Assembly: GCA_965637545.1 (NCBI GenBank)
Contig: OZ281498.1
Span: 27,528,001 to 27,592,000 of the forward strand
Reading direction: 5' to 3'
Length of the DNA stretch: 64,000 nucleotides
Origin: Phallusia mammillata
Lineage: Eukaryota
Shown here one piece after another: positions 5,783-35,370 of the stretch. The notes under the pieces were generated by a model. That model was not told where the DNA came from, did no database searches, and saw only the letters and a list, made by a program, of their open reading frames with translations. The position numbers and the translations under genes are program-made. Each line of letters opens with the position of its first letter. The stretch's first letter is position 1.

Positions 5783-8700
5783 TCAAGCATAATATCCCAT
5801 TAGAAACGTCACAGCCATTGCCAGTGTAATAGCCAGGGCATTAAGGAGGAAATTTTCGGAAAATAATTCCTTCTTTCTTCCGGGTTTTTCTGATGCTCTG
5901 CTGCTTCGGTTGCTCTGAGATTCTACACAATGTATTTCGTAATTTACTGCCCAATTGCAAGTATTTAACATAGATTTAATTTAATAACTAAACGTTTATG
6001 GGTTATAGTATTAGGGTGTTATTTTTTCAGGGAATGTATTGGAGATCAAGTTGCCAAATTTTGAACTAAAAATATTGATGCAAACGAGCTCGGGGTGATA
6101 GAAAATTTTAAACTCACCAAAATCTTCATCCAAATCTCTGTTTTCTTTTTCCGGTTTCAGATTTTTTGTTTCTTTTTCATCGCCTGTCCCCGAACCGTCG
6201 TTTCCGATTTCTGTTTCTGCTTTTTCTTGTGCCTGTTTTGTCTCATTCTCATTTTTATCCCCGCTTTCATCATCTTTCACAAGTTTCTCTGCAATGTAGC
6301 AAAAACGTAATAACTTAGTTGAGATCGTTATCTCCTTTGCAAGAGGTTGCTTAACGAGCTTTGTGTAGACAAATGTGGACGACGAATTGGGTCACGTGTT
6401 GTTGCTATTAATGTGTTACCAGCTATTCTTGAGATGTACACAAGGTTCTAAATTCAATTAAGTGTCCACATACGTTCACTGCCTTAAGACATCGACTATT
6501 CAGACGTTATACTATCAATAAAATGCTGGAAATCAACCACGGACCAGCTTCGGGCGTTCATGCATTACTCGTTTTTCACAATCTAATTTAGCGCCAACCT
6601 TTAGTTGTTTCTCCCACTTCCTCAACCTCGTAAATTTCCAACCGCTTGGTGGGGCTCGTCGGTCTGGGGCTTTCCAATTCTGTGACGTCATCTTTTGTAA
6701 ACCAGGTGGTTCCCCTTAACTGCAACAGTTTGTTTAAAAAACTTTTCTTCAGTAGATTCCAGTGAATGAAAGCAATTACCTGCTTTTCCGGCAGAGGTTT
6801 TGTGGCGTAACTGACAGAGATTGTGACGACACAAGAGACAGTGAATACAATCGGAGCCACGTGCAAATAATTTACCCTGAAAACAGTTTACCGTGAAGGT
6901 TATTTCACCACACAGTGTGAAAATAGCTTCTCACTTGTGAACGATCCAAGGTCTTGACTCCACCTCGTCACAAGCTGGTCCGGAAAAATAAAAATCCAGG
7001 ATTAATCGGATGACTCCGCCCGTAAATCCACTTATAAGACCCCAGAACGCTCCCTGCAACACGAACGTAAACTTCCAATGTTTACTGATAACCATTTCAC
7101 ACATTATCACCTTTTCATTAATACGGGGCCACAGAATTCCGAACAAGTAAAGAGCAAAGATGGGAGGACCTAGCGCTGATTGGATTGATTGCAAATAGAG
7201 GAAGAGCTGTCCTCCGGCGGATGATAGGATCACCGGGATCCAGAGGATGCTGATCACCACCAGGACACAAACAGTCAATCTGCGCGCAGGGAACAAATGG
7301 ATGTTGCATAAGTAAAGATAACGTCATGTACTGTTACGTCATCATAAAACTCCAACATAAAAGCCTGCCTACAAACGTTTTAAAACAGGGCTGGGCAACC
7401 TTTACTGTAGGGCCAATTATAAATGTCAAAATTGGCTCGCGGGCCGCACATGTGCATAACACAAAGTGATTTTGCTTTGTTTCTTACCAAATATGCTTAA
7501 CTGCAAGCAAAATTCGTATTTGATTCTAGCCACATTTTGCCACATCGCAGAAAACTAGCACCAGGCGCATTAATCAGTTTAAAAATATGTAATAATTGGA
7601 CTCGTTTGCCAGTACTTTTGAAATCCAAACGTCTCTGCGGGCCGCACAAGCTTTAATGAAGGGCCGCATGAGGCCTGCGGGCCGCAGGTTGCCCACCCCT
7701 GCTTTAAAACGTCCACAACAAAAGTCCTTTAATTTGAATTTCCCGCGCAAATTTATCCTCCTTACTTCCCAACGATCAACATCTCTCTCTCGGACGCCTC
7801 CTTGCGGATTCTCTTCCACACGTCGATGGTGAAAATTGTGCTGGTGCTGTTGAATATCGATGTGAGGGAACTCATCAGAGCAGACAACATCGCCGCAACC
7901 ATCACTCCGCGCAAACCTGCGGTGAAACGTCACTGTGCGTCATCATAAGTGCGATGACGTCATATAGACGTGTGTTACCTGTGGGTAGGATTTCTATGAC
8001 GAGTTTGGGGTAGGCGATGTTAGAACAACCCTGTGCGTTGCCACAGACGCGCTCACATTCGCCTGATGTTGCGCAGGCCACCTCATCCGGAAAAAATACT
8101 CGGCTAATCATGCCTGAAAAATATGGAGCAGTTCTTTAATCCAAAAATTAGTCAACAAAATCTGGTCTTGAAGGGTGTATTACACTTGTGGGTGAGGTCA
8201 GCCTGTGTAGATCACAGTTTAACTCAATGACTGTTGGCATATGTATGATTACTTCTGGAGGAACAGACCTCAGCTGTGCTAAGCATTATTGTTACTTGTC
8301 ATATTTAAGCGAGAAAGTCGTAACATAACGAGAAACATTACAGGAAAATATGGAGTAGTTCTTCAGTCTGAAAATATGACAACAAACTTGAAGAGATGGG
8401 GTGTATTAAACCCTTGTGGATGAAGTCAGTCTCTGTAATTCACAGTAAAAATCACAACGTGACTGTTGACTTTTTTTGTCTACTTAACGAAGGACAGATC
8501 CTAGCTGTGCTAAGCAAGGTTGTTACTGTTCATATTTTCAGCGAGAAAGCCGTACCAAAACGAGAAAAAATACAGATGATTTCGTAAAGTGGTGGAAGCC
8601 CGTGAAGAAAGCAAAATCAAATCTGTATATTTGTCACAAAAACACCAAAGAAAAAAATGAAAAAAATGCTAAACAACAACTGGTCATATTTGATTTACAA

Positions 8701-11700
8701 TTCCTACCCGTCATAACAATCATGTACATTGGGATAATCTTGAGCGCTCCAGCAACGATACAACCTGCTTTGGCGTGTTGAGGAGACTTTGCAGCAATCG
8801 CACGCTGCACAATCACCTGTTCAACGTAACAATGTGTTCATTCATACGTAACAACCACCATTGAATCCCACTCCCACCTGATCCGTGCACCAATACCACG
8901 ACCCAAGGAAGTAGATTCCGAGGATCATTCCGGGCCACGGGAGGTCTGAGGTTACTGGGTCACGGAAGATGTGGAACGAATCCGCCCTCGGAATTCCGCA
9001 AGAGGTGCTATTTCCCGATCGTATGATATCTATGGAGGTTTGCGGTATGGCTTGCATGTATTTAATCTTCAGGTTTTCGTAACCTCCGATTCTTATAAAA
9101 CCTGTAAGAGGATGGAATACAGTGGTGGGATTCAGCAGGTTCGCACCGGTTTCAAAGAACCGTGTCACGAAATTTTATGAGACCAGCGAACCGGTTAGCA
9201 TTACTGGTTACTGTCAATGGACTTTTTGTAACAAAACCGGCGGAAAAATATTACGCTTGTGACAAAACCGCCTGACAAAAAATTTGAAACCCACCATTGA
9301 ATGTAAGTCAATTCAAAAAATGCAAATGGTTTTCTACAAAAGAAATTTGTGTTTAGTGGGAACCTTTGAGAGGTCCCTACTTTAAGCGACGATCAGAAGA
9401 ACTGCACGAGATCAGTCATGCAGATTTTTGTTGTATAAGTGAAAATTAACACGTTTTCGGAAAATATTTTGGTCCCTTGTTGTTTACGTGAAGAACCAGC
9501 AAAAAGGCAGCATTAGTGCCGTTAACAATCGTCTTTTATGCAAATTTGAATTATGGCGGTTTGGCTTTAATATTATTGCCCAGAGCTTTCAAACCCCGAG
9601 TCTTAAACCAGCATATTTAATACCGTTTTATTATTTAGCGTTCTCATTGAGATGTTTTAAACCAACAATGCTGGGAGTTTAGATTGTTATAAAGTTGTAG
9701 TTCAACTTCTTACTCATGATCATAAGCAACATTCCTCCTAGCAGCATGACAACAGTCTGCATCGTATCTGTGTAAATCACCGCCTTCAATCCTCCAAGTA
9801 TTGTGTAAATTGCCGTCACAACAAGGAGAGATACTGGAAGTAAAATAATTTTGATCAGCGAACTATAATAGTTGAACTATTCACAAACAGAATAACCACT
9901 TATTGTTTGAGTAAGGCTGGTGTATCCACCTTTTCTAGCTTTCTAGTAGCCTATCAGGATGTTTTTATTGATGAAAATTGGTGTGTTTTTCTTGCAAACG
10001 TTTGCACATTGTTTTCAGTGGGGTTGATATCACTTAAGCAGACTTTTAGTATTTCTAGATATGTATTTTCTTTGTATTTAACGTTTCACCATTGCGCAGC
10101 TATTTCCGGCTTGGTGATTGTTTTAGTTTATATTTGTAACGATATGTTGTCTATCACCGAGCGAGATAAAGTTAATTAAACTTCTGGTTCGGAAAGCGAC
10201 TATAAACGTTTTAAACAGACTCTATCATACCTTCACCTACCAACAATTCAACCAAAAAGTGAGATGAAAGAGTAAAAGTGAAATTACCGATAGCTAGATA
10301 CATGTTGATATTGAAGGCTTCTTGAATGAAGAGAGCCCCAGCATAAAGATCAACAGCGATCTTAGTAAGAACGTATAAAGCGAGGGAAATCACCGAAAGT
10401 GTTACTCTCAATCTGGACCCGCCGAATCTTCGGTGCAAGTATTCCGGCATAGTGTAAACCTGGAACATTCGGTCGTTTTGGTAAACAACATGCACTACGA
10501 GTTTGTACGCATTCGAGCTGCACTGTATGGTCGTTATTTTGTCTATTAATACTTGAAGTTGTTGATAAAAATCGAAACTGGCGATGCCCTACTATACAAA
10601 GCTGACATAAGCAGCATACAACGCACGCAACAGTGCCTGCATGGTTCGACTTTTATGAGGTTACTACTACGTACCGAGTATACATTTGTAGCTCGGTTGA
10701 GCCTGACAAGATGTCGTGGGTTCGAACCCCACCGCTCATTTGTTGCCCTCGCAAGTTGTAAAATGTTCTTACAAGTCCACCCACGATTTTCTACCCTAAA
10801 ATTCATCTTGAAATGAAACGATGCGCAATAAGCAGCTATTTCCGGCAAGGGGAATATTTTAGCGCAATTGTGTTACTACGATTTGTTTATCCAAGCGAAA
10901 AAAACTCAAACAAAACTGGGGTTGTACTTAAAAAAACATATAACTGCAACATGGCAACCTTGCATGCGGTGTAGATTGGCAGAAACATCCAACCCAACTG
11001 AATTATCTGATAGGGCGCGATCCATTCAAACGAGCCAATAGCAATTCCTCCCGCCGCCCCAGCTCCCGCCAACCCGATAAAATGTCCGCTCCCGATGTTT
11101 GAAGCAAATAGAGAAGCTCCTACCGGCAGCCACCACATGTGCTTGCCCGCTAGAAAGTAGCTCTTAACTGTGTTGCCAGATTTGCTGCACGATGCCTGTT
11201 AAAAAATCACGGGTTTAAACACTCTGCTTTTTAATCATAAACATAACTGCCAAAGTACTGGTGTATATAGAATACTATGATTAAATTACTTTTCAAGTCC
11301 GTGTATAGTACTCTGCTTTTTCTTTATTATTAATATCTGCTGGCACGAACCACTAATATTTAGAAAAACGTTGGCACGCGAGGTCATTAACACATGGAAA
11401 TAACAAGTAAATTGGCACGCGTCACCTAAAAAGTTGCCGATCCCTGATATAGTGTTTATGGGAAACATATATGCAGGTACCAGCTTTAATTTTAATGCTC
11501 GATAATCTTAATGCTAAAACATTTATATGCGTATAAACGAAATGACAAGTGAACCAATCAACACCTTCAGAAAATCAACACATGTTGTCACCTTTTGTTG
11601 TTTGTCGTTGAAACTTGCACGTGTATATAAGTTATGTGTGTCTTTCGAACGATATGCGAAGCCTTCACATGACTTACCTCGATTCGATTATGTGCAAAAA

Positions 11701-12198
11701 CTGAGTTCACTTAAAGATTAGGTCAAGAACAGTGGTCGGCAACGGCCGGTCCGCGAGGAGTTTGTTACCGGGCCGTATAATTTTCCAGGTTTATTGCTTT
11801 AAAACATTTTGCCCATGTATCCCGGGGATGACAAACTAATTTAGGAGTTTCATCGCTGAATTTTTGTAGTTTGTTAAAGACCGGTCCGCGATGAGATTTC
11901 ACTTTCAAAAACGATCTGCAGTTAAAAAAAGCTTGCCGACCCCTGGTCTAGAAGGTGCACGAAACTGATCAGGCTTCTTATTGGGGCAATGAAAGAAAAC
12001 ATTAACGCCACAATACTTACGTCTTCGACAACTTACCCATATTCCGACGGCAAAAGTGGCCGCCATATACGTCACTACTATTACGACATCGACAGCTCCG
12101 AAAGTTGCTTGTTCTTTCTGGACCATTGTTACATCACTGCTTGTCATAGAAGCATCGGTCGTCTCCATGACAACAGTGGTTTGCAATACCGACGCCAT
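5783..12198 (-). CDS. Sodium:solute symporter, SGLT/SMIT (SLC5A1/9/10/11-like) subfamily, about 711 aa
   Basis: 14 exons: 12198-12037, 11195-10959, 10459-10288, 9833-9714, 9101-8878, 8816-8708, 8113-7979, 7916-7766, 7279-7111, 7053-6935, 6876-6780, 6719-6599, 6273-6118, 5946-5783. Motifs [68 protein letters not shown]. Exact orthologue not assignable. Confidence 0.95.
7386..7701. mobile_element. hAT/Charlie-type MITE (CAGGG..GGGCAAC TIR family)
   Basis: TIRs CAGGGCTGGGCAACC / GGTTGCCCACCCCTG; flanks TTTTAAAA / CTTTAAAA; internal GCGGGCCGC repeats. Confidence 0.85.
8116..8570. repeat. Diverged two-copy tandem duplication (about 228 bp unit) in SLC5 intron 6
   Basis: GAAAAATATGGAGCAGTTCTT... 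at about 8116 and GGAAAATATGGAGTAGTTCTT... at about 8343, with colinear similarity (GGGTGTATTA, GTCAG, AGCTGTGCTAAGCA, GCGAGAAAG). Confidence 0.8.
9120..9299. mobile_element. hAT-type MITE, CAGTGGTGGGATTC family
   Basis: Both TIRs present (right one degenerate), shared internal GAACCGGTTAGCATTACTGGTTACTGTCAATGGACTTTTTG core; TSD not preserved. Confidence 0.88.
10688..10737 (+). mobile_element. tRNA-derived SINE head fragment
   Basis: GTAGCTCGGTTGAGC (A-box-like) and GTCGTGGGTTCGAACCCCACCGC (B box/T arm); no acceptor stem. Confidence 0.55.
11310..11446. mobile_element. Partial hAT-type MITE (TGGCACGCG subterminal repeats; end GTTGCCGATCCCTG)
   Basis: Same end structure as 45660-45840; left end not located. 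Confidence 0.5.
11730..11945. mobile_element. hAT/Charlie-type MITE
   Basis: TIRs CAGTGGTCGGCAAC / CTTGCCGACCCCTG; TSD GTCAAGAA / GTCTAGAA (Charlie-like NTCTAGAN target). Confidence 0.85.
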
Positions 12199-14396
12199 TT
12201 TGTTTGCAAGAAAAACTTATCGTTTTGTTCTCCTAACTGCAAGACTATAGCTAAGCACATAGAATATACCAAAGTCAATGTTATTTACACTGATAAAAGC
12301 GACCTGTATAGGACGTCGAAACGTCGAAATAAAACTACATTTGCCAGAAGATCTCTATAAACTTGATATTATGCCTGGCAGCAATAGCTTACTTAAAAGT
12401 CCCTAAAACTTGCGTAAAATCGGGAAAAAAACCTTTTCAAATAACCGTTACTGGAGAACTGAAAGTAAACATGTGCAAAAGCGCCTGGTAGTCTCGTTTG
12501 CATGTTGCAAACACTGCACCCAATATGTACAACTTCCTCACAACTATTAGGACAACCTGTGCTTTGTTATATGCAAAACTGTGCAGATTGCAAGAGGTCC
12601 GGAAAGTAATTCACACGAATGACCGATCGCCCTGTAGTCGGTTCCGGAAAGCAGGTTAAGTTTACAAGATTCTGGGGTAACTTGTTTGCTTTAATCCGCC
12701 GCACCGAGCAAACACGTGTTTCTTGTTATCTACACATGTTTGGATATCTAATATATCAGCAGACTTCCACAGGATGCAAGGCGTTCTTCGTGGTTAATGA
12801 TTAGAACATTTGCTTGCGGTGGAGAAACATTAGCTTGCCTGATGCACGACATACAAAAACTATTCATTGCATACAAAACAATATTTGACACTTAACGACT
12901 TGTAAGACCACAGGAATCAGCCTGTGTGACAGGATGGTGACCGACTGTCTTTATTTATCAAGTACATAAATAAAGGGAAGGACCGAATGGTCTGGCGCGC
13001 CTGACCCAAATACAGAGAAAATAAAAACCCGGATCGGGATTCGTCCCCGGGATTGTCCTGGGTTCGAACCCCGTAAAAAAAGTACTCAAATGGGCGATAT
13101 TATTGTTTCTGTTTCGAAAATAAAAAAATTCATTGACGCTGATCGTCTGCCGCGCTTCTTGAGTATTTGGTACACGACTTTTCTGCTAAATGTTTTTATT
13201 ATTTCAACTTGATGGCGGACACGTTGAGACAAAAATACCAGGAGATCTAAATAGGATAAAATACATTTTTTAATTCAGACGTTTAATCAACTTGTGTCTA
13301 CCATAGAAACAAAATACTTTTTTTAATTTCTTTTTCTCCCTATTTAAAAAATATTTGGTGAACGTTGAAAAGAAGAAAATAAAATCATTCAGCCAAAAAC
13401 CCACATTCCTCTAAATACGGTGAAAATTTTGCACGTGGTCCAGTGAAAACAAATAACGTGGTTACGAAATCTACGTAATCAACATACGTAACAGTGGTAA
13501 CACTACCTCCCATTATTATCGTTTATGACGTAATAGAAGTGACTCCGTGAGATAAACAGCTGTCTTGGTTGTCACGTTTTTGGTCAATACGTATTTGATG
13601 ACAACATTTAACTAATTTTTGTTTCTGGTTTTAGTGAGTTTGGTTTTAGTTGTGTTTGTTTAGGATGAAGTAAGTGCTATAAGCCTATTTATAACTGTGA
13701 GGTATTACATTATTGCTATACATGTAACACGCAGACGATATCTGCAAAGATATAAACATTCATTTTAAGATAACTGTTTATCAAACATGTTTTTTGTTAT
13801 ATATTGGGCATGAAACTACTTTAAATTGTGCCCATTTATTCGCTGAACTAGAAATTCTTAATTGTTTTCTGTTAAAGTAACAAAATTTGTCCGGGCTGAT
13901 AAAAGTTTGTTGGGCAAAAAATGATTATAACAATCTGTTATAATATCAGTTAATATCATACTTATAAAATGTGCATTAAACTTCTCCAAAATGAAGTTTT
14001 TATGCTTAATTCAAAAGGTCAAAAGATTGTTTTATTAGTTTCCAAGATAAATGCAGTGATTTTGGTCAGTGTTTGTCTCTGGTGTAATTTATAACATAAT
14101 GTTTCTGTGATGCCCTCCTTACACAGCCCTTGCTTATATTTTCATTTTAGAGACCATTCAAATCATTCAAAACAGCTTTATAGTTTCAAACATAAAAGGA
14201 TGATCAGTTTGTTACATTTGCTGTAAAGTATATGGTGAATGCAAATAATGTGGATTTAGCAAATAATGGATTTAGCATGTATGGTGTTGAAATATCTGTA
14301 ACTTTATTTTCTTTCACAGATGAATCGAAATTTAGATTTGCATTTTCCCAAACTTTCTGAAATAAGTTTCCTAAATTTTCAGTGTAGAAGAATTTG

Positions 14397-17300
14397 ATGC
14401 CGAAAAACAAACCAAAGAAGTCCAAAGGCCGTGGGTTCAAAACCAGAGCCGAACAGCTGCAAGGTTTTCATTCTTTTAATTCCATGAAATAATAAACAAT
14501 ATTACATTGTACATAAATTTGAAGGTGTTTTAAATTATGAATAAAAAGTTATTTGATCAAATAAATATGGTCTCAAAATGCAGTGGCCTGAGACTTAATA
14601 TTTTTATTGTTGAAATTTATACAATAATATAACTGCATTTAAAATGGTGGGTAGAGTTGGTAAAAAATCTTTATTCATGCCGCCACAATGATAAGCAATA
14701 TGCAGACAGTGCACACTGTTTTGGCCTATAATATCTCATCAGTGCAGCTGGTGACAAGACATTGATTAGCTGTACAGGCTAGAATAGCCGGGCTATGACA
14801 TTACAGTTTGTTGAGCTTATGGGCTGAAAGTCATGGCTTACAATATATTTCATATGTACCCAGTGGTGGGATTCAGCCGGTTTGCATCGGTTCTATAGAA
14901 CCATCTCACGAAATTTTATGAGATCAGCGAACCGGTTAGCATTACTGGTTACTGTCAATGGACTTTTTGTAATAGAACAGGCTGAAAAATATGACTTTTG
15001 TGATAGAACCAGCTGACAAAAATTTGAATCCCACCACTGTATGTACCACATCTGTATTTACTATTTCACCGCTAAATTTGGCCAATTTTTATTTCCAGCT
15101 GGTGAAAGTGCATCTCAATCCCAGGATGAGGAGACTCTGAGTGACACCAGCAGTGTCGCGACAGCTGCCAGCGACTACCATGACGATGTGGCAAATGGAG
15201 GTAATTATATGTTTAAAAGTGGCTATGTGTGCTTGCCATAAAATACACTTTAAACTGTCAGAAAAACTTGGCCCCAATTGAAGTTAGAATATGTGGAGTA
15301 TTCAGTAAATCTTTAAACGTGTGTAGAAAGCCAGTTTTTAGCTTTGGTGTTGACTATCTGTTAATGCTGTAATCTTCTCTTGATTGGAAATATATTAGAT
15401 CTTATTGTGGCTTTTTTTATTGACCCCTGAGGTTTGAAAGAACTGACTGTTTGAATTAGGCCGCTAAAAGTTTCCTTAACAAAGTTTCTTACAAAGTAGG
15501 ACACAATACACCATAAAAAAACACTTTTGTGACATGCAGAAAATGCAGTGGAAGGATCAACCCTTGAAGATACAGAAATAAGATTAAAAGAAGTCATCGA
15601 AGGATTGACAGAAAAGAATGCAAAGCACAGGTAAATTGGGAACAATGTTTTGGTCTTTTTGTGACTGAACGATACATCTGTGTATTCAATTTTAAAATAC
15701 ATACACAGTCAAATTTGGTTAATCATCATTTGGGCGAAAAGTTTGTCTGAATTAGCCATACCACATTACAAATTTGTACCTTGAGTTCTTGTGCGAATAA
15801 GGCGAAGATCCAGATTAACCAAGGTTTACTGTTTAGCCTAATATGGTTACCCGCATAACCCATTTTGTTGCATAGAGATTGTAAATCCATAACATGTCTA
15901 ATTGCATGTACACAATAGCTTTCAAAGTTGTTATTTTATGAACATGTTTCAGCTATACTATAGAAGTGACAATACCCTAAAATAGACCTGTATATTATCC
16001 TGTCGTATTCAAACTTTGAGACAATCATCTTTACAATATTACAGACAGAATTGTTTGATTGAGATTCGGAAAGCATTTGCCTCAACTTGGCTGGTTGCGT
16101 TTCTGGAGAATTATCAAGAAACACTTCTGGATTACATGGAAAAATGTCTCAGGAAAGGTTGGTTTCAAAAACCAAGTTAAAGGCTAAAATACTTGGCATA
16201 ACAAAACAAACTTCACATTAAGTGTATTAGCTGTTGTTTGCAATAGACACAAATTACAGGGATGTTTTGTCTAAGTTAGTATGGATCTTTATCAATTTCA
16301 TAAACTTTGAAAATACCTTTACACGTTTTCTAGGCTGCCTTTTGCAGCCTTTGTGATTTGCGCATGCAAACATTACTTCATCCTGTCACAACAATGTGAT
16401 TCATTGCTGCTACGTAACTGTTGTTTTATGATGTCACAGGCAAAGGGGAAGAACAATCGTTAGCTGCCGATGCACTAGCTGTTGTTGGAACGCAGGTTGT
16501 TGCATGTGGAGAGGGCGAAAGACTTTTCCTCCAGTTCAAGTCTATTTTGCTTGTTATCATTTCCGACAAATCTGCCTCTACTGTTGCCAGAACTAATGTG
16601 AGTTATGAACATTTCCAATATTTATTTATTGCACAATTATGCACATGTTCTTTACGTTACTTGTTCAATGGCATAGGAATTGCAAATCCCAACCCATAGT
16701 CATTTGTTTACTAAATTTTGAGGAAATCACAATGTCCGTTGTTGCAAGCTAAATAGAGGCTTGTTGCAAACCTTATATAAGCTGGCCCACAAATTTGTGT
16801 CTATGGATACATTTGGTTTAACGACTACAAGTCGCCCACCCCTAATCTGATGTAACATTTTTGGGATAAAACTGCATAAGGTTTAAGGTGTGACTACTAA
16901 TACTACTGAATATCGATGCCACCTTCTTAGGATTTTCCTACTGTCATTCCTTTAGGTTGTCATTTCAGATTAGGAGGCAAAAAAAAAGTTTTTTAATGCA
17001 CTTTATATGAAAAAAGTTAACTCTAGTACATGATTATTTTGTGATTTTCAAAGAAATATGTCTTGTGGTCCATTAGTTACCACCCATAAGCAGCTGTTAA
17101 AATTTTTACTACATTCGTAAGGACATTGGACTTTTGCTTGTGCTTAGTCATATTTTCTTACCTGATTCGTTTTAAAACCCAATTTTGCAACCCTGAATAA
17201 AAACTTGTTACATATTTCACAGTGTTGCCGAACTTTGGGATTGCTTACATTCATGGCAGTTGATGAAGTGGCACAAATCTACTCGTGCATGTCAGCATTT

Positions 17301-25185: not shown

Positions 25186-27734
25186 ATGTCATCACAAATT
25201 GACGAATATACTGTTTGGGTTCCGAAACAAACTTCAAAAAAATACAATGTTATGAGATTTAATGCTGGAGACAGAGTCGATATTAGAGTAAGTATATTTC
25301 ACTGTTTGTCATAGAAATTCCGTTTATTTATGTAACAAACTGTTTTCTCTTAAAATTATAATTTGTTTTGATAATAATTGTTGCTTGAAATTGCATGAGA
25401 AGTTCTGTTCTTTTTATATCAAGCTTTTTTCTCCTAAAAATTGTACTATATTTTGGTAATAATTGTTGTGTGTTGTAGAATTGGGTGGATGGAACTTTGT
25501 CCCGAGATCTCAGTGCAAAAAAGATTTACGTTGAAGAAGATGACCAACCAGAGTTTGGTGAGGGAAGTGAATATGGAAGAAAGCAAAGACAAAAGGTGAC
25601 AATAACAATTTAACTGCAACACTCATTCATCATGATAAAAAAGCTATTGCTTAACCTCATCATAAAATATCAACTTTTCCCTTATATCCAGTGGTGGGAT
25701 TCAAATTTTTTTTCAGCCGGTTCTATCACAAAAAGTCATATGTTTCAGCTGGTTCTGTTGCGAAAAGTCCATTGACAGTAACCAGTAATGCTAACCGGTT
25801 CGTTGATCTCATAAAATTTCGTGAGACGGTTCTAAAGAACCGGTGTGAACCGGCTTAATCCCACCACTGCTTGTATCACAATATCTATCTATATTTGTCT
25901 GTTTATCCAAGTTGTTTGTTTGCTTTTTAGGCAAGAAAACTAAAATATGGACACAGGGAATCCGTGTTTAAAGTTAAAGACCAACCATGGAATTTGAAAG
26001 TTTCTACCATCGAAAATCAGCCGGACTTTAAGAAAAAAGTGAATGGCAAAGTTCCAACAGACATTAAACCAAAAGTTGTCATGAAAGAGTTTTCAGGCAA
26101 GAAGGAGGGTGGAATTGGAGAAGGGTCAGTTTATTTTGTGTTTACTCAAAGACCAGACTTTACTTTCGAGGCGAGCCCTGCTGAAGATTGGTACAACTTT
26201 CGTCGAAAAATCTCGCATCGGACTTTAACTGATGAAGAAGCGGAAGCTGCGTGGGACAAACGAGACAAGATTATGAACCACCTGAATTACATGGCAAGAA
26301 AACGGTTGCATATTAAAGAAGAGGATGACATTGATGAACCTGAGGGGAAGAGCATGAACAAAAAGAACCTGAAAAAGATTAAGAAAGAAGAGAGCGATCT
26401 TGTAATTCATGACGACGAGGATTTAGATTTGTACATGAGTGATAGCAGTAGCGACGATAATGAGCCTTCGGGTTCGAAAAAGAAAAAGAAAAAAGCGAAA
26501 GAAAAATCAGATGACGAAAAAGAGGAAGCTCTGGAGGACTCGGATGACGGGGAGCATGATGGAGATGAAGTGATGTACGCCAGCGACGTGAGCAGTGAAA
26601 ATGAGGAGGTAAATGACTCACGTGTGGTGCCAAAAGGTCTCGACGAGCTTGAATCCTCGTCCAGCAGCGAAGATGAGGAAGAAGAAGCAAAAAAAGCCGA
26701 GGCAAAGGAGAACGAGACGGTGAATAAACTTGTGAAGGGCAGCGATGATAGCGCGTCTTCATCAGAGTCGGGAAGCGATATTGAAGACGAGGACGCTTTG
26801 TCAAAAAGTGCTCTTTTCATGCATGTGAAGAAAAGTAAAGATAAAAAGGGTGGAAAAGGAAGTAAACAAGGCAGCAGATCATCTACGCCAACTGCTGAGC
26901 TGAAAGGTACTGCTGTGTTTAAATGTTTTTTTATGATTTATTACTGAACCAAGTTTTGCATTCATATTAAGATAGTTGACACAAGAAAACCTTAATAATA
27001 ATCAATGTCTTCCATTTTGATTTTACATTAATTTTACAGTTTAATTCAAGATTTTATAGTCAACACATAAGTTTCCTGTGTTAACCATCTTCTTAATTTA
27101 ATATATCTTTGAAACATAATGAAATAGCAAACACATCCTTAAATAGTCATAATTGAAAAGTGTGTGGTTACGGATAAGATAAGTGTGTTCATAATTAATT
27201 TTTTACAAAAGTGTTGATGTATACTTTCTATTACATTAACTTGTATGATAAACTGTTATTACTACACTAATATAATAAACATTGTAATACGTTATATTTG
27301 TGGTTTAAAAATTATTTGCTTTGTCAGGCACACCAACAAAATCCAAATTAACTGACGTCGCAAAAAAGCTGGAAAAGCAGGGTCGGAAATCGCCGTTGGT
27401 TACCGGTGGGTCGGTGTTGGGAAAACGAAGCGCTGGAAGCAGTCATAACGACAGCTCAGTTAAACGACAGAAGATTGGTCAAAGTAGTACATCTTCTCCG
27501 GGACCTAGCACTCCGCCGAAAGATCTGGCTCAAGGTGCGATAACGGAAGATGCTGTGCGTCGTTACCTTACACACAAACCCATCACCAGCAAAGATTTGC
27601 TGAAAAAATTTAAAACCAAAAAAACTGGACTGCCAAGTGAAGAAATTGTGAAAAAGGTTGTTAAAATTTTGAAGAGGCTGAATCCAGACAAGCGGAACAT
27701 TAATGGAAAAATGCATTTGTTTTTGGAAAGTTAA
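25186..27734 (+). CDS. GTF2F1: General transcription factor IIF subunit 1 (RAP74), about 533 aa
   Basis: Exons 25186-25287, 25479-25595, 25931-26906, 27328-27734. EYTVWVPK..KKYNVMRFN, DQPW, WYNF..HRTLTDEEAE, acidic/basic linker, C-terminal winged helix ITEDAVRRYLTHKPITSKDLLKKF. Confidence 0.96.
25689..25869. mobile_element. hAT-type MITE, CAGTGGTGGGATTC family (opposite orientation)
   Basis: TIRs present; TSD CTTATATC / CTTGTATC. Confidence 0.93.
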
Positions 27735-28303
27735 ATGTTTTTTGTGAATCACTGCAATTTGTATTCCTGGATTTTAGGCAATGTTCATCTAATTTTTTTT
27801 CTCATACTGTTGCAGTGAAAATTGGCTTATGCTTTTGTGTAAACCAACCAACCAACTAACCAGTTTAAACAGCGTTTAGGATAAACTGTTCAGTTTCTTC
27901 TTGAGGCTAAACTATTTGTAAATGAATGATATGTTGGAATTGTATGTCGCTCTGTAAAAGTTTTGTACAAAAAAGTTTATGTTGTGCTTAATGCTTGTGG
28001 TAAGGTAAAATAATGGGCTGCAAGCCTCATATCGAATTACTTTAAATATTTTTTCGCATTGCAGTAGTAAATACCTATTCATTTAAATAGTAAAAAATGG
28101 TGGGACAAATGCAGTTTATCCGAATTTTCAGTGTACAAACCGTTGGTAACATGTGGTAACCTGTTGTACAAAATAACTTGTCAAACTGGTTGCGCATTAC
28201 AACTTTTCTATTATTCTTTGCATCATGCCCCTTTTTCTTTTGACCTTGGTTTGTCTTTTTCTTCAGGTTTTAGGGATATTTAAACATAATATTAAATTGA
28301 AAT

Positions 28304-31300
28304 ATGTCGAGTTCCAGCAACAATGTGAACAAGATATTGGCGAGCACATCAAGACTTGCATCATACAACATGTTGTTACAGGTATGTGAAAAAAAACTAT
28401 TTTCTGTTTTGCATTTAATAGTTTATATTTTACAAACTACCCATGTTGTTGATGTATTTTGTGATTGAATGCACTGAAACATCAATGTATGTGCTCTTGT
28501 TTTTTCAATTTGAAAATAATGAACTGAAATACAAATTTATTTGAAACCTAAACCTCTGTATCCCAAGCAACGCAATAATATTAAGAGTGACTAATGCAGT
28601 TCAATAGAGCACTCTTGGCAAAATGTATTTTGTATGAATTTCAAATGTGGAATTTTGTCTTTTATGCAATATTTTAAATTCCAAGACAAAGACAATGATG
28701 TTTCAGAGTTAAAAGGACAAACTATGGAGGAACCAATGGAAAAGAAGAGCAGATTGGATGTTGCAGTGTTAAATCCTTCCACTTGCATTAAAGATAAGAG
28801 GATATCTTGTGTATTGGGTGATGAATATGCTGCCAACAAAGATGCAGTTGGTTTGGTGAAGGGACTGGCTGTGACACTCACAAGCAAAAAGTATGCGTCG
28901 CAAGTTTTGAAACATTTAACGGAGTATCTGCCACTAGAGGGCCTGCAACATCTCAAGCGAGTTCGAAGTGTCAAAACACATGATGGGGATAAACTTCAGG
29001 TTCTTATGTTCGTTGCAACGCTGCATGAAGATTTTATGGACTTGAATAAAACATTAAATATTAAAGAGATTAAGCCAGTAAAGGATTTTATCATGGACCC
29101 AATGTTTGTGGCCATACCGATAAAACCTCCGTTAACTAGAGATCAGTTCAACATATGCAAGCAGTATTGGCCAGTTTCGTTTCATGAGGATAAGAAGATC
29201 AGTAAACTTTTGTCATGTAGTTTGTTTACAGACGATGATATGGACAGAATTGAAGAAAATATGGACTTAGCAATTAAAGCTGCAAGAATTGGTAAAAAGT
29301 TTGATCCGAGATGTGATCAAGGTGTAGTAATTGTTGATCCTGCCACCAACTCAATCATTTCAACTGCATTTGATATGAGAAACATGGAATGTGAGATGCA
29401 AGATGGCTACTTTGCAAAGCATCCATTAAACCATGCAGTTATGGTTGCCATTGATCTTGTGGCGCGATCACAAGGAGGCGGCATGTACACATATAAACCA
29501 TTTCTAAAATCAAATTCCAAAATCAATGATGGGTTGTATTTTAATTCAACTTTGCCTACTTCTGCAAGAAATACTTCTGATACGTCGGACAAGGGCTATT
29601 ACATTTGCACTGGATTGGATGTTTATGTAACAAAGGAACCATGCATTATGTGTTCTATGGCATTGTTACATTCACGAGTTCATTGTGTTTTCTATGGTGT
29701 GAGTCGGCCTGGTGGTGGGTTGGGCTCGGCGTATAAACTTCACGCAAGAAAGGATTTAAATCATCGGTTTGAAGTGTTTTGCAATGTTTTAAAATCAAAA
29801 TGTCAAGTTTTATAGCAGTTTTAAAAACAGTCTTGTACTTCTGCTGTTACATGTTTTTTGAAACAGGTTTGTTTTCTGTATGATATTTTTGTAGCTGCTT
29901 AGTGAGGTAAGGTAATGGTGAAGTGTTTTGCTATCTTTTGAAACCAAAATATCACTCTTTCTAGCAATTTAAAAATGTTATTACTTGCACTGAACTACAT
30001 GCTGTGTTTTGGCTTTTCAAACAGTTTTTTCTGTTATAATTTTCTCAGTGAGGTAAGGCATGAACTTTTTGTTTTTCAGTTATCGTTTCGAGTTCTTACG
30101 TTTGTGCTGAATGCATTCGTACTTCGATACATCACAAAGGAGACACTAGGTGTCGTGAATGTTCGACTTCTACTTCTCTACTCAACTGTTTTGTTTATGT
30201 CAAGAGAAGCATTTAGAAGGTAAAGTTGATTGAAGCTTACTTAATGAGGAATTTTCTTCGGTATAACATCATTTACATTTTCAATTTTTTAATCACTTCT
30301 GTTGTTTTAGTGAATTTTGTTTTAGTGACTTCTGTTGTTTTAGTGATTCTATTCACTAATACCAGTTTTGTCAACATGAAATACCCGTAGTCTTCAACCT
30401 TTATAGCTATTGCTGTGATTCTATGCACTCTTGTGATTGATGTAACAATTACCAGCTTTTGGCAACCAGACATAAAATACAAATATTAAGCTAGAAAAAT
30501 GCAATAATCCTATTTGGTAGTCATCTATTGTTGTCAAATGTGAAAAGACTTAAACTGATTTGTTTCCTACAGAGCTTGCCTAAGTACTGATACAAGTCAT
30601 GAAGATGGGAAGACAACAAGTTCCAAAGTTCGATGGAAACAAACTGTCAACTTATTATGGTGCATGTAAGTTCCAAAAATATTTTCAAAACACCATCAAT
30701 ATGCCAGTTTTAAAAGCAGACAGCAGTTCTACAAAACCGGATAGAAGTATTAATAATAATGGCTATAATTCTTAACATGTAGATTAAACATCACTTTACA
30801 CATGTACAGTGTATTCAGCAAAACATACCATGCGAGCATATTTACTTGATTCAGAACTATACATGGATCTGTTTCTAAGTTTTATGAAGAATATAATGTC
30901 CCAAATAGACGTAAAAAGTGACATGCTTTATTATTCAAACAATTTGGCAGATGCTCACATCAGTGATATAAAGGGCCACACCATTTTATCACAACTTTAT
31001 AACCAGATGTGTAGTGGTGTACTAAATGTGAAACGTATTTCATCAGCTTGTTGGTATCTTAACAAACTTATGTAATCTCTTTTTGTTTTGTTTTTTTAGA
31101 CTTCCTGTTGGCGTGATTTGCAATGCACTTGCAACATACACTTGGATAAACTTGCTTGAAAACCCAGATCCCACCATAACACCACATTACACATCAGCTG
31201 TGTATGTGTTCGGTCTGTGTGCATGGGCTGAACTGGTTGTGGAGCCGCTGTGGGTGATTGCACAAGCGTTTCTCTTCATCAAACTGAAAGTGATCAGTGA

Positions 31301-34300
31301 AGGACTCGCTATTCTCGCAAAATGTATCGTCACTGTGGTTTTAGTTCTTTTGCGCCCGCATTGGGGTCTTGTATCATTTTCTATTGCACAAGTGAGTGAT
31401 GTGAAACAAAATGTGTGGTATTTTCAAGTTAATGTAAAGTTTATAATCATTAGTTTTCATGAATATATGAATGTAAAATGAAAGAAAATATATTTTGTCC
31501 CTCACTAACTCTAAATTACAATGGACATAAATTCATAACTGTGATCAGGCCTAAAGAGTCTATGCAGACCAGTCACTAGCAAGGCACACCCATGTACAAA
31601 TCATAGCACACAAGGCCCATTAAAGGCATTATACAGAATCAGCTGGTAACCAAGCATTCCAAAATGGCAAGGCAAAGGCTAGAAAAATTTGGCCTGCGGT
31701 GGGATTGGAACATCACTAACTTCTAATATTTTCCCATAATTGGCTCTGTTTAAATAAAGTTTGTCATGTAAAGTTTAAAATGTTGTTGTGAAAATAAATT
31801 CCAGTGTTATTTTTCAATTTATTGCTTAAATTTCCAGGTTTCTTTTTCCATTGTATATATCTCAATTTTCTATGGATACTTCACTTGGTTCGTGACAACA
31901 AACAAACAGAAGCAAATGGATGATTTTCCGTTTTCATCAGTGGCCGATTTCTTTCCAAAGTTTTATGTTTCTGAAGGATTTGTCGACAGAAAAACTGCAA
32001 AACTTACTAAAAGTTTCTTCAAACAATCTGTGCTTAAACAACTATTAACAGAAGGTACAACTGCTGTGAATGTCGTATGCTGTAGCCAGCCAGTGGTGGG
32101 ATTCCAATTTTTTATTAGCCGATTCCATCACAAAAGTGACATGAGCTACTTGGATTCCAAAAATTTGTGTTTCAGATAAGATGCAAAAGTCCATTAACAG
32201 TAACCAGTTATGCTAACCGGTGCGCTGCTCTCATAAAATTTCGTGAGACTGTTCTATAGAACCGGTGCGAACCTGCTGAATCCCACCACTGGTTTTAACA
32301 TCAGCGAGATTCTGACTACTTGAACTATTTTCTGTTTAAATAATTGTACAATTAAGTGACATGTCTATATGTTGTGGTACATACCAATCTAAGTATATAA
32401 TGGCATTTCATGTGCAAAACTTTTTTATGCAACTAACCAGAATATGTTTGTTTTTTCAAATAATGGCTTGGGTTTCGCTACTCTTATGCAATTAAATGGA
32501 ATTTGTATTTAACTTGTTGTAATTTACCTAAATTACCTGTACAACTTAACCTTATTATTGAACTTCTCTGTAAATATTTCCAGGTGAAAGATATGTGATG
32601 ACAATTCTGAACGTTCTCAGTTTTGCCGATCAAGGTGTTTATGACATCATAAACAACCTCGGTTCTCTCGTCGCACGGTAAGTTTACAAAACTGATTTAT
32701 TAAAATTTTCGTTCTGTAAACAAAATGTTTTTCTAGGTTTATTTTTTTACCAATTGAAGAAAGTTTTTACTTATTCTTTGCAAAAACGTTGAGAAGAGGG
32801 GAGGATTCGACAAAACAAAGCAAGGTTATAAAGCTTTTCTATTGTATACTGTAATAACTTACTTCGCCTGGAGAAGGTTGATATCATTGTTTCAAAAAAT
32901 TGAAACTTAACACAAACAACTTAAACTGACTTTGAGTTGTTGTTATTCTGTGGTTGGTGACGGCAGTTCAGTCACTGCAAATAAAACAACAATTTGACTT
33001 AAGTAACTGTTGATAAAAAGCATAGTTTGACATTTGCCCGACTGTGTGTAAAGCTCAGCAGCCAGCACAATCTTTGAAATAAACTCAATTACAACTTTTT
33101 GTTACATTGTCTACAATTGCCACACCTCGCATTTTAAACAGTGCTGTGACTTAATTACCAGACTTGACTGGCAACTTACATTTGTACACAATTTAAATGA
33201 CCATACTTAGTTGTTTTTACTGTCATTGTTTATCGAGCTCAACAATTGACTAACGCTTGCCGATTTTCAGGATGAAATCAAAGCGGTAACCCACGTATTA
33301 TTTTGTCTTCTGCGATTGGTTGTGTTAATTGGATCAGTGATCCTTGCATTTGGATTGCCCTACTCCAAGTTATTGCTGGATATTTATGGAGGAAAGATTT
33401 TAAGTGCAGGTGAGTTTACAGGTTTAAGACTCTGCTTATTTGTTGCAAAGGTAATGAAGTGGTTACTGCATCTTATCCTGTTTTGGTTCTTTGAGCAGGA
33501 TTGCACCCAGCCCAATGGAATCTGGTGACTTAAACTCTCTCTTATGGCATGTCAATATTGGATTTATTATTCTCACAAAAATTGCAACCAGTGGTGGAAT
33601 TCAATTTTGTTTCAGCCGGTTCTATCACAAAAGTCCTATTTTTCGGACGGTTCTGTTACAAAAAGTTATATATATTTTTCAGCCGGTTCTGTTACAAAAA
33701 GTCCATTGACAGTAACCAGTAATGCTAACCGGTTCGCTGATCTCATAAAATTTCGTGAGACGGTTCAATGGAACCGGTGCGAACCGGCTGAATCCCACCA
33801 CTGCTTAAAACCAATGTAAACCTATTTTAGGTGCAAAAACATAAGTTGTTTTCACAGCATTGGTTGATCAGCATTTTTGTCAATAAAATAATAACTACAT
33901 GTTTTCTGTCTGAACCGCTTCTAGTTCCTCTCACACTTTGGGGAAAAGCCACAGAGCATATTTGTCTTAATCAATAAAGCCTTCCAGCTTTTATTGATAA
34001 AATGTCAAATTTCATGAAGTGGAACAAAAATAATGGGCAAACCAATGATAGAGTAATGAATATAAAACAAGCATCAAACACAGAAGTTTCAATCTTATAT
34101 GTCATGTTGTGATTTTCAATTGAAACTTTTATAGGTGTTGGACCGGTGCTATTGAAATTTTATTGTCTCTATGTGCTGACAATAGCAGTTAACGGAACAA
34201 CCGAATGTTTTGTGTTTGCTGCAATGAACCAAGCTCAAGTTGACAGGTTAATAATAATTAATCAAAATCAATGTTTTTAACAATGAGTGTCACATGCTAA

Positions 34301-35370
34301 GGAATGATAGACCTTTTGAGGCTTAATTTAAATGACATTAGTGAATTAAATCAATCTCTTTGAATGTGTTTGCTTCAATAAATACATATTGTCTGAAACT
34401 GTCCTGTACAAAAGTTTGGTCAGTGCCAAGAATTGTGTTGTTTAAATCCACTGCAAGATTATTGGGCAAATCAACCCTTCAGTCATCAAGTTAGCATTCT
34501 CATACAAGTTGGTTTAAAATATTAAAATATGGGACCAAACAAGAGTATGTTTGAATTTAGGTAAGCACCTTTGCCCCCTTGAGAACTCCCAAGTGAGATT
34601 TTTTTGGGTTCGATTTTTCAGTCTTTCAATGCAGATATAAGCTTGACATGAAATAACATTGTAACTTGTTTGTAGGTACAACAAAAAGATGTTTTTGTTT
34701 TCATTGTTGTTTCTTGTCACCTCTTATTACCTCACAAAGACAGTCGGATCTGTTGGATTTATTTTGGCAAATTGTTTGAATATGTCGGCCCGGATCATTC
34801 ATAGTATCTGGTTTATCAAAAGGTAAAAAAAATATTTTGTTTCTTGTTCCATTTTTTGTTTTTATAAAACATACAACATAGACAAATCTGGTTAATTAGA
34901 TAAATCACTTCATCGCAAACAGATCATAAATCCCAATGCAGCTGCTACTTCACCAGGCTCCGATGATGACGTAGTGAAATTGTTTGGGTAATCGCATAAT
35001 ACCAGTTAATTGCATAAAAAGGTTTAGGATTAGGTAATGGGGATAATAATGGCCCAAACAGAAAATTTGGCTGAAATGTAACAATTCAAAAAAACATTTT
35101 TTTAGATTTTACAAAGGAATGGATGAAATAAAATCACCTTTGCTTGGAATAATACCCAGTAATAAAGTGATTGTTTCATTAATTGCGTCGAGTTTTATTT
35201 GTTTAATATCTGAATCTTACTTATGTTGTGATCATGGCTGGCTTTGTAGGTTAGCTCACATTTCAATTGGCGCTGTTTGTTTATTTGTTTGTTGCATCAC
35301 AATATGGTTGAATGAAGGCTCTGTCGTCCAGTTCTTACATGAGCAATATTTCAAGAAGCATTCTGAATGA
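28304..35370 (+). CDS. RFT1: RFT1 Man5GlcNAc2-PP-dolichol translocation protein, about 554 aa
   Basis: 11 exons: 28304-28381, 30080-30219, 30573-30665, 31100-31391, 31838-32054, 32584-32677, 32737-32824, 33271-33409, 34135-34246, 34676-34822, 35106-35370. [10 protein letters not shown]|[70 protein letters not shown]. Confidence 0.95.
28724..29815 (+). CDS. ADAT3: tRNA adenosine-34 deaminase non-catalytic subunit ADAT3, intronless CDS (about 363 aa from ATG 28724; ORF open from 28634), nested in RFT1 intron 1
   Basis: [22 protein letters not shown] (V replaces the catalytic E of HAE), [35 protein letters not shown]. Confidence 0.95.
   Translation: MEEPMEKKSRLDVAVLNPSTCIKDKRISCVLGDEYAANKDAVGLVKGLAVTLTSKKYASQVLKHLTEYLPLEGLQHLKRVRSVKTHDGDKLQVLMFVATLHEDFMDLNKTLNIKEIKPVKDFIMDPMFVAIPIKPPLTRDQFNICKQYWPVSFHEDKKISKLLSCSLFTDDDMDRIEENMDLAIKAARIGKKFDPRCDQGVVIVDPATNSIISTAFDMRNMECEMQDGYFAKHPLNHAVMVAIDLVARSQGGGMYTYKPFLKSNSKINDGLYFNSTLPTSARNTSDTSDKGYYICTGLDVYVTKEPCIMCSMALLHSRVHCVFYGVSRPGGGLGSAYKLHARKDLNHRFEVFCNVLKSKCQVL
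31535..31712 (-). mobile_element. tRNA-derived SINE copy (5' truncated)
   Basis: Reverse complement matches the body of the 36790 and 50598 copies (CCAAGCATTCC, TGGCAAGGC, GCGGTGGGATT). Confidence 0.75.
32091..32291. mobile_element. hAT-type MITE, CAGTGGTGGGATTC family
   Basis: Both TIRs and shared core; no clear TSD. Confidence 0.9.
33589..33803. mobile_element. hAT-type MITE, CAGTGGTGGGATTC family, with internal duplication
   Basis: Both TIRs; the segment GGTTCTGTTACAAAAAGT occurs twice. Confidence 0.9.

Follow-up and report, generated by a model that had tools for sequence, protein, structure and literature searches.

ADAT3 in the first intron of RFT1 in the ascidian Phallusia mammillata: a probable single transcription unit with a common first exon

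Introduction

Pairs of genes that lie on the same strand and share their first exon, but differ in coding sequence, have been described in human, where 24 such pairs were reported, ADAT3/SCAMP4 among them (PMC2568002, 2008). A classic conserved single-exon nested gene is VAChT/unc-17, which is located in the first intron of ChAT/cha-1 (PMC3053374). Nested genes of mouse and human are often found in first introns, and same and opposite orientation relative to the host are about equally frequent according to a 2024 survey (PMC11694760). A different arrangement is found in the operons of Ciona (PMC1488885). These consist of tandem cistrons with no intercistronic region, and the AG at which the downstream cistron is trans-spliced to a spliced leader (SL) is also the point of polyadenylation of the upstream mRNA. 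Here we describe a locus of Phallusia mammillata in which the intronless ADAT3 gene is located on the same strand inside the first intron of RFT1. The locus lies in a 64,000 nt stretch of DNA (contig OZ281498.1 of assembly GCA_965637545.1, positions 27,528,001 to 27,592,000, forward strand), which is referred to as the window and whose first letter is position 1 in all P. mammillata coordinates given below. Our analysis indicates that RFT1 and ADAT3 are likely to form one transcription unit with a common first exon.

The pairing of RFT1 and ADAT3 appears to be undescribed in the literature searched, as an earlier sequence-only reading of this locus had supposed: a full-text literature search found the two genes together just in lists of disease genes. 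The overlap of the two genes in Ciona is already present in public annotation. The same reading took most nested genes to be antisense to their host, which disagrees with the survey mentioned above, where the orientations in mouse and human are called 'broadly similar' (PMC11694760).

Results

One Donor Is Spliced to the ADAT3 Exon or to RFT1 Exon 2

The positions that the sequence-only reading had assigned to the RFT1 start codon (ATG 28304), the donor (28382), the ADAT3 open reading frame (ORF; 28724-29815) and the in-phase start of RFT1 exon 2 (30080) were found to be exact. The elements that make up the proposed unit are:

28247..28266, + strand: SL trans-splice acceptor, with AG at 28265-28266 preceded by a polypyrimidine tract
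28267..28381, + strand: common first exon of RFT1 and ADAT3, with the RFT1 ATG at 28304 and 26 codons
28382..30079, + strand: RFT1 intron 1, 1698 nt, phase 0, enclosing the whole ADAT3 exon; joint 28381>30080
28382..28706, + strand: proximal intron, spliced out in the ADAT3 mRNA, with a GTATGT donor and a weak acceptor; joint 28381>28707
28707..29995, + strand: ADAT3 terminal exon, coding sequence (CDS) 28724-29815 plus 3' untranslated region (UTR), from RNA contigs and homology

The ADAT3 CDS (28724-29815) thus lies on the same strand as RFT1 and within its intron 1 (28382-30079), in agreement with the sequence-only reading. Contigs of four runs were used to analyze splicing over 27300-33299: X1, X5, and X7, which are RNA-like and come from three different studies, and X15, a DNA run. 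The RNA sets act as RNA, with exons covered and zero depth in bins that are wholly intronic or intergenic. A GT..AG joint from 28381 to 28707 was present in X1 (depth 21.4) and X5 (depth 58.4), representing two studies, and a GT..AG joint from 28381 to 30080 was present in X1 (depth 21). Altogether seven GT..AG joints confirm introns 1-7 of RFT1, introns 2-7 in all three RNA studies. One donor (28382) serves two acceptors, 28707 or 30080; both junctions had been anticipated, and an alternative junction to 28686 that had been listed next to the one at 28707 was not seen. The contig of exon 1 halts precisely at 28381, the branch point of both joints; a de Bruijn contig stops where two paths diverge. 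Both mRNAs have the same exon 1 and the same donor, as expected from the earlier proposal that one pre-mRNA must choose between the two products, and continue into unrelated coding sequences, ADAT3 and RFT1 belonging to unrelated Pfam families. The acceptors differ in their polypyrimidine content: with 8 pyrimidines in the 20 nt preceding its AG, 28707 has the lowest value of the 12 acceptors in the locus, compared to 14 of 20 at 30080 and 11-18 of 20 for the other 11 acceptors as a group.

Many nested genes are independently transcribed, and an ADAT3 gene with its own promoter in RFT1 intron 1 would resemble VAChT, for which work cited in the reference list of PMC3053374 describes own promoters in the first intron of ChAT besides the shared exon. 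Bin 28500-28699, located within 28382-28703, had an RNA depth of zero in each of the three RNA sets, and this speaks against a promoter inside the intron; depth was also zero in bin 27900-28099. The ADAT3 contigs of X1 and X5, moreover, start with the joint to exon 1. We therefore consider an own promoter for ADAT3 very unlikely. On the 3' side of ADAT3, the stretch 29996-30076 is free of listed RNA contigs and falls in a bin of low depth, which speaks against both a start of RFT1 3' of ADAT3 and transcripts that run on from ADAT3 into exon 2.

The Common First Exon Is Trans-Spliced to the Ascidian Spliced Leader

The X1 RNA contig over 28265-28381 carries 18 loose letters at its 5' end, CGGGATTCTATTTGAATA. 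Joined to the genomic AG at 28265-28266, these letters spell the 16-nt ascidian SL ATTCTATTTGAATAAG, which is identical to the SL of Ciona (PMC1488885 Table 1). Pyrimidines make up 17 of the 20 nt preceding this AG. The GGG ahead of the SL may be left over from template switching, in which case the 5' end would be complete. The presence of SL letters on the exon 1 contig shows that the mature 5' exon comprises 28267-28381 and is made by SL trans-splicing, the shared exon being joined to the leader at 28266/28267. The exon contains the RFT1 ATG (28304) and 26 codons that end with ...LLQ at 28381, directly followed by the donor GTATGT at 28382, and the encoded peptide is 56-59% identical in Ciona and in an ascidian-like assembly (L006). 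As the 5' end is set by trans-splicing at 28267, the true transcription start is erased for both mRNAs; the common exon implies a common SL acceptor and does not strictly prove one promoter.

SL trans-splicing is active at this very locus, and every downstream cistron of a Ciona operon receives the SL by trans-splicing (PMC1488885). In an operon-like alternative, the main rival reading, the productive ADAT3 mRNA would be formed by splicing of the SL straight to 28707. This would remove the upstream ORF described in the next section, and with it the difficulty posed by an upstream AUG that has A at -3; the joint between exon 1 and ADAT3 would in that case represent a by-product, either minor or non-productive. 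Short (16-nt) SL branches are liable to loss in assembly, and 59 loose ends fall outside those listed. Yet the contig that enters ADAT3 runs into 30 nt of exon 1 and not into the leader in two studies, and no SL loose end at 28707 was found among the loose ends listed. Furthermore, ADAT3 is located inside a cis-spliced intron, and a gap of at least 85 nt separates the end of its RNA from the next acceptor, so that the two do not abut. We judge this operon-like route to be unlikely as the main source of ADAT3 mRNA, although it may coexist with splicing from the shared exon.

The ADAT3 mRNA Contains an Upstream ORF That Starts at the RFT1 ATG

Joining the shared exon to the ADAT3 exon creates an upstream ORF (uORF) in the computed spliced sequence:

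28304..28712, + strand: uORF of the ADAT3 mRNA, 28304-28381 spliced to AGT TAA at 28707-28712

This uORF of 27 codons starts at the RFT1 ATG and ends with TAA at 28710-28712, 11 nt 5' of the ADAT3 ATG and in a frame that differs from the ADAT3 frame. A one-codon ATG-TGA is additionally present in the leader of the ADAT3 mRNA. Position -3 is A at both ATGs, and position +4 is T for RFT1 and G for ADAT3. Judged from this leader, ADAT3 would be translated by leaky scanning past the uORF or by reinitiation after it, probably with lowered efficiency. In Ciona, the best predicted acceptor (9979) would place the stop of the uORF 10 nt before the ADAT3 ATG. A fusion protein of RFT1 and ADAT3 was considered and rejected, as all candidate acceptors between the donor and the ADAT3 ATG lead to a stop before ADAT3 or are out of frame with it.

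The Host Gene Is RFT1

By homology, the host gene is RFT1, which encodes a membrane protein of the Rft-1 family that acts in N-glycosylation. Exon 2 alone matches the Pfam Rft-1 profile at positions 15-59 (55.7 bits), and exons 1 and 2 together match positions 4-60 (70.8 bits). Since the match is extended and gains 15 bits when exon 1 is added, exon 1 represents the true coding N-terminus of RFT1. A further Rft-1 match is found in exon 4 (profile 88-188). Exon 2 starts at 30080 in phase 0 after the acceptor ...tttttcag (ctttttgtttttcag). The gene model comprises 11 exons with an open frame of 554 aa, the stop of which ends at 35370, and is collinear with the 562-aa RFT1 gene of Ciona along its whole length. 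Downstream of the shared exon the exons are:

30080-30219, + strand: RFT1 exon 2, RNA joints
30573-30665, + strand: RFT1 exon 3, RNA joints
31100-31391, + strand: RFT1 exon 4, RNA joints
31838-32054, + strand: RFT1 exon 5, RNA joints
32584-32677, + strand: RFT1 exon 6, RNA joints
32737-32824, + strand: RFT1 exon 7, RNA joints
33271-33409, + strand: RFT1 exon 8, homology to Ciona RFT1 and splice sites
34135-34246, + strand: RFT1 exon 9, homology to Ciona RFT1 and splice sites
34676-34822, + strand: RFT1 exon 10, homology to Ciona RFT1 and splice sites
35106-35370, + strand: RFT1 exon 11, homology to Ciona RFT1 and splice sites

Several further observations concern the RFT1 introns. In the last part of intron 1, an ATG at 29975 is in frame through the exon 2 acceptor (ORF 29975-30223), and an intron-retaining transcript starting there could give RFT1 a different N-terminus of 35 aa. 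In the DNA run X15, 56 nt of intron 2 (30280-30337) are replaced by 20 other letters, an indel polymorphism. Introns 3, 4, and 5 (30700-31099, 31500-31899, and 32100-32299) hold very highly repeated elements, with DNA word depths of up to 112,672 and 837,749 in these repeats vs. about 380 elsewhere, and RNA contigs at 32291-32296 continue into many unrelated flanks.

The Nested ORF Is ADAT3

The intronless ORF at 28724-29815 (363 aa) is, on the basis of its similarities, ADAT3, the non-catalytic subunit of tRNA adenosine-34 deaminase. It contains a match to Pfam dCMP_cyt_deam_1 (PF00383; 2e-11), and among solved structures mouse ADAT3 (7nz7_B, 3e-53) is the best match, with both the N-terminal and the deaminase domains aligned. 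Residues 40-252 align with residues 38-238 of mouse ADAT3, which represent the ADAT3-specific N-terminal domain. The PCxxC zinc motif is present (EPCIMC opposite EPCVMC of mouse ADAT3), and in the pseudo-catalytic motif H-A-V the catalytic Glu of H-A-E is replaced by Val, in a stretch that aligns with LHAVMVCIDLVA of 7nz7_B. Replacement of Glu by Val in H-A-E is a defining trait of ADAT3. The top database matches of the ORF carry the name ADAT3, and the P. mammillata ADAT3 entry in UniRef is identical at 352 of 363 residues (97%), which assigns the window to this phlebobranch ascidian or to a very close relative. A search of the assembly index for the exact ADAT3 protein gave no record. The residues that differ from this entry cluster at allelic single nucleotide polymorphisms (SNPs) at 29214-29419, where a cluster of linked SNPs occurs in runs X5, X7, and X15; this suggests two diverged haplotypes of the segment.

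RNA contigs on the ADAT3 exon span 28704-29681, 29652-29763, and 29734-29995, and ADAT3 contig ends were found at 29904, 29955, and 29995. The 3' part of the exon and the adjacent intron sequence contain a duplication:

29766..30066, + strand: diverged tandem duplication of about 150 nt, from pairwise alignment

The duplicated unit consists of the terminal ~50 nt of the ADAT3 coding region and ~100 nt of the 3' UTR; Tandem Repeats Finder gave no report of this diverged duplication. Both copies are closed by the 12-mer AGTGAGGTAAGG, which resembles a 5' splice site (29901-29912 and 30047-30058). These are the only two occurrences of AGTGAGGTAAGG in the 64 kb, in which AGGTRAG is found at seven sites on the + strand, and the second copy lies 21 nt 5' of the acceptor of RFT1 exon 2. 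The two copies are candidate U1-binding sites that could affect 3'-end formation of ADAT3. Neither the duplication nor the AGTGAGGTAAGG pair is conserved in Ciona. Use of the copy at 29901-29912 (GT 29907) as a donor to exon 2 was rejected: the joints listed include none of this kind, and RNA contigs continue across the site. An Rfam scan of 27600-30700 detected no RNA family.

RFT1-ADAT3 Nesting Is Conserved in Some Tunicates

In the NCBI table of Ciona intestinalis (L001), TFIIF-alpha (6026-9444), the RFT1 CDS (9821-16636, 562 aa) and ADAT3 (10001-11161) are located on one strand. ADAT3 falls within the span of the RFT1 CDS, and NCBI already annotates the two as overlapping genes. Exon 1 of Ciona RFT1 is MSKSNKDINTVLASASKLASYNMFLQ, followed by the donor gtaaag. 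In L006, exon 1 (3022-3105), ADAT3 (3241-4410) and RFT1 exon 2 (8335-8472) occur in the same order. A further locus (L010) contains an ADAT3 that is sister to the one of Phallusia, with an RFT1 exon 2 about 450 nt downstream that is 96% identical.

These loci bear on the explanation that the arrangement is an artefact, either a misassembly or a chance ORF taken for exon 1 while RFT1 starts 3' of ADAT3. The ATG at 29975, which reads in frame into exon 2, would provide such a start, and the best DNA run could be the source sample of the assembly itself. Yet the RNA joint 28381>30080 is present in addition to the lack of listed RNA contigs over 29996-30076, the Rft-1 score rises when exon 1 is joined, and Ciona and L006 have kept both the gene order and the peptide encoded by exon 1, the NCBI model of Ciona RFT1 starting at the homologous ATG. 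The DNA contigs of X15 are collinear across 27300-30088, which together with the same order in Ciona, L006, and L010 indicates that the nesting is not a misassembly. The two findings that the sequence-only reading had named as fatal to its proposal, misassembly and RFT1 transcripts starting downstream of ADAT3 that lack 28304-28381, were thus not borne out, and we regard an artefact as practically negligible.

A separate and well-supported clade of tunicate ADAT3 sequences is formed by L002-L005 and L011. No recognizable RFT1 exon was found in L002-L005 within 10 kb on either side of ADAT3. Searches of these four loci by tblastn with a partial and the full RFT1 model gave no match better than chance, and a pattern search for ORFs resembling exon 1 upstream of ADAT3 gave none. 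In L002 and L004, 20 ORFs on the plus strand near ADAT3 (19 downstream and one just upstream) gave no Pfam match. In protein searches, RFT1 exon 4 gave one match and exon 2 gave ten; the best tunicate-like RFT1 fragment (P0122) is located on a contig of 165,008 nt, separate from the ADAT3 contigs. In L003, ADAT3 is closely followed by a LINE-like ORF of 1049 aa on the - strand (13589-16738), which contains endonuclease and reverse-transcriptase domains.

The gene upstream of the shared exon in Phallusia is TFIIF-alpha:

27321..27734, + strand: last coding exon of TFIIF-alpha (GTF2F1), Pfam TFIIF_alpha, 2e-23

TFIIF-alpha is the same-strand upstream neighbor of ADAT3 in L001-L005, which are all the tunicate loci with an upstream flank and include the clade without RFT1. 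Human GTF2F1 and ADAT3 are both located on 19p13.3, and the linkage of the two genes may be old.

Outside the tunicates, ADAT3 of lamprey is intronless, with no overlapping CDS and no other called gene within 10 kb, and ADAT3 of a teleost is intronless with no overlapping CDS and with TsaD, an ALKBH-like gene and ORMDL as neighbors and no SCAMP; the tables used for both species list CDS ranges and could overlook a host whose shared exon is non-coding. The sequence-only reading had described SCAMP4 as the host of ADAT3 in vertebrates, which agrees with the human pair with its common first exon (PMC2568002) and seems too broad for vertebrates, given the lamprey and teleost loci. In an abalone, ADAT3 is a multi-exon gene spanning 17 kb. 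Nesting with RFT1 is absent within 10 kb in lamprey, teleost, and abalone. An intronless gene in tunicates, lamprey, and teleost and a multi-exon gene in abalone no more than suggest a retroposed origin of ADAT3.

An insect RFT1 fragment (P0124) equals a second one (P0123) with residues inserted after ...NIIFQ, apparently as an intron-retaining version. The break at ...Q|(V/L) corresponds to the position of Phallusia RFT1 intron 1. As the same intron position is implied in an insect, RFT1 intron 1 is probably old and would have been entered by ADAT3.

Discussion

The primary transcript of the locus gains the ascidian SL at 28266/28267, and the first exon (28267-28381) brings the RFT1 start codon and the first 26 codons to both mRNAs. 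Use of the weak proximal acceptor at 28707 gives a two-exon mRNA, consisting of the SL, exon 1 and the sequence from 28707 to about 29995, with the entire ADAT3 ORF in its terminal exon, and use of the strong distal acceptor at 30080 gives the 11-exon RFT1 mRNA. We propose that each pre-mRNA would yield one product, because the ADAT3 exon and its 3'-end site would preclude RFT1, and the ratio would be set by proximal splicing plus polyadenylation vs. distal splicing. On the ADAT3 mRNA, ribosomes would meet the RFT1 AUG first and then reach the ADAT3 AUG by leaky scanning or reinitiation. The old RFT1 intron may have received ADAT3 in an ancestor of the ascidians, and ADAT3 would have used the promoter of its host since. 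The sequence-only reading missed the SL on the shared exon, the RFT1 start as a uORF, and the nesting in the NCBI annotation of Ciona.

Several points weigh against this model. The RNA support consists of assembled contigs and not of reads; contigs conceal how abundant the transcripts are, where they truly begin and end, and which rare forms exist. The joint 28381>30080 comes from a single run (X1). Assembly may trim away the short branch that a leader joined directly at 28707 would form, and the lack of such a branch therefore carries no weight. The ADAT3 contigs show no poly(A) site, and no AATAAA or ATTAAA occurs between the ADAT3 stop and RFT1 exon 2 (29816-30079); upstream cistrons of Ciona operons are likewise reported to be without a polyadenylation signal (PMC1488885). 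The acceptors of Ciona and L006 are predictions, and the predicted gap between uORF stop and ADAT3 ATG in L006 is 72 nt and not 10-11 nt. Finally, a related tunicate clade has ADAT3 without RFT1 nearby, and the order of evolutionary events may be another.

A wider scenario is possible but doubtful. Chordate ADAT3 would be a promoter-less and intronless gene that survives by borrowing the first exon of a host, independently that of RFT1 in ascidians and of SCAMP4 in mammals, and a conserved uORF (stop 10-11 nt before the AUG, predicted in Ciona) would set its output by termination-reinitiation and tie tRNA editing to the RFT1 promoter. The earlier claim that ADAT3 repeatedly occupies first introns was overstated, as it concerns two hosts only, and is hypothetical in that form. 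Since ADAT3 has another first-exon host in human, the question why some genes come to depend on a host promoter can be tested by comparative genomics.

The locus reveals no new mechanism. It offers a clean, RNA-supported chordate case in which two unrelated housekeeping genes would depend on a splice and 3'-end choice in one pre-mRNA, with the unusual feature that the start codon of the host becomes a uORF in the mRNA of the guest. For annotation and quantification of ascidian transcriptomes this means that reads of exon 1 belong to both genes, and a knock-down, morpholino, or CRISPR cut directed at RFT1 exon 1 or its donor would also affect ADAT3.

The locus is not an operon of the Ciona type. 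It has in common with such operons the SL, one primary transcript for two genes and probably one product or the other from each transcript. It differs in that ADAT3 lies in an intron of RFT1, is joined by cis-splicing from a common donor, and has RNA ends at least 85 nt before 30080. Intronic retrogenes can capture 5' exons of their host, so that an intronless coding exon uses the promoter and first exon of the host. ADAT3 resembles these as an intronless exon in a host intron and differs in being apparently the only copy in the organism and not a duplicate.

The cholinergic locus is alike in having a whole ORF in one exon within the first intron of a host on the same strand, in alternative splicing, and in conservation between distant species. 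The two cholinergic partners act in one pathway, whereas tRNA I34 editing and the handling of the N-glycan lipid carrier have no evident link. The shared exon of the cholinergic locus is non-coding; the exon shared by RFT1 and ADAT3 is coding for RFT1.

The human pairs, among them ADAT3/SCAMP4, CPNE1/RBM12, and ANG/RNASE4, are alike in orientation on the same strand, in a common first exon, and in a choice made by splicing and polyadenylation, and one promoter serves two unrelated proteins in these pairs (PMC2568002). CPNE1/RBM12, the pair examined in detail in that study, share non-coding exons, whereas the Phallusia exon is SL trans-spliced and holds the start codon of the host and 26 codons. 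In ADAT3/SCAMP4, ADAT3 itself is one of the partners, with SCAMP4 as the host where Phallusia has RFT1. The RFT1/ADAT3 locus fits this known class of same-strand pairs that share a first exon.

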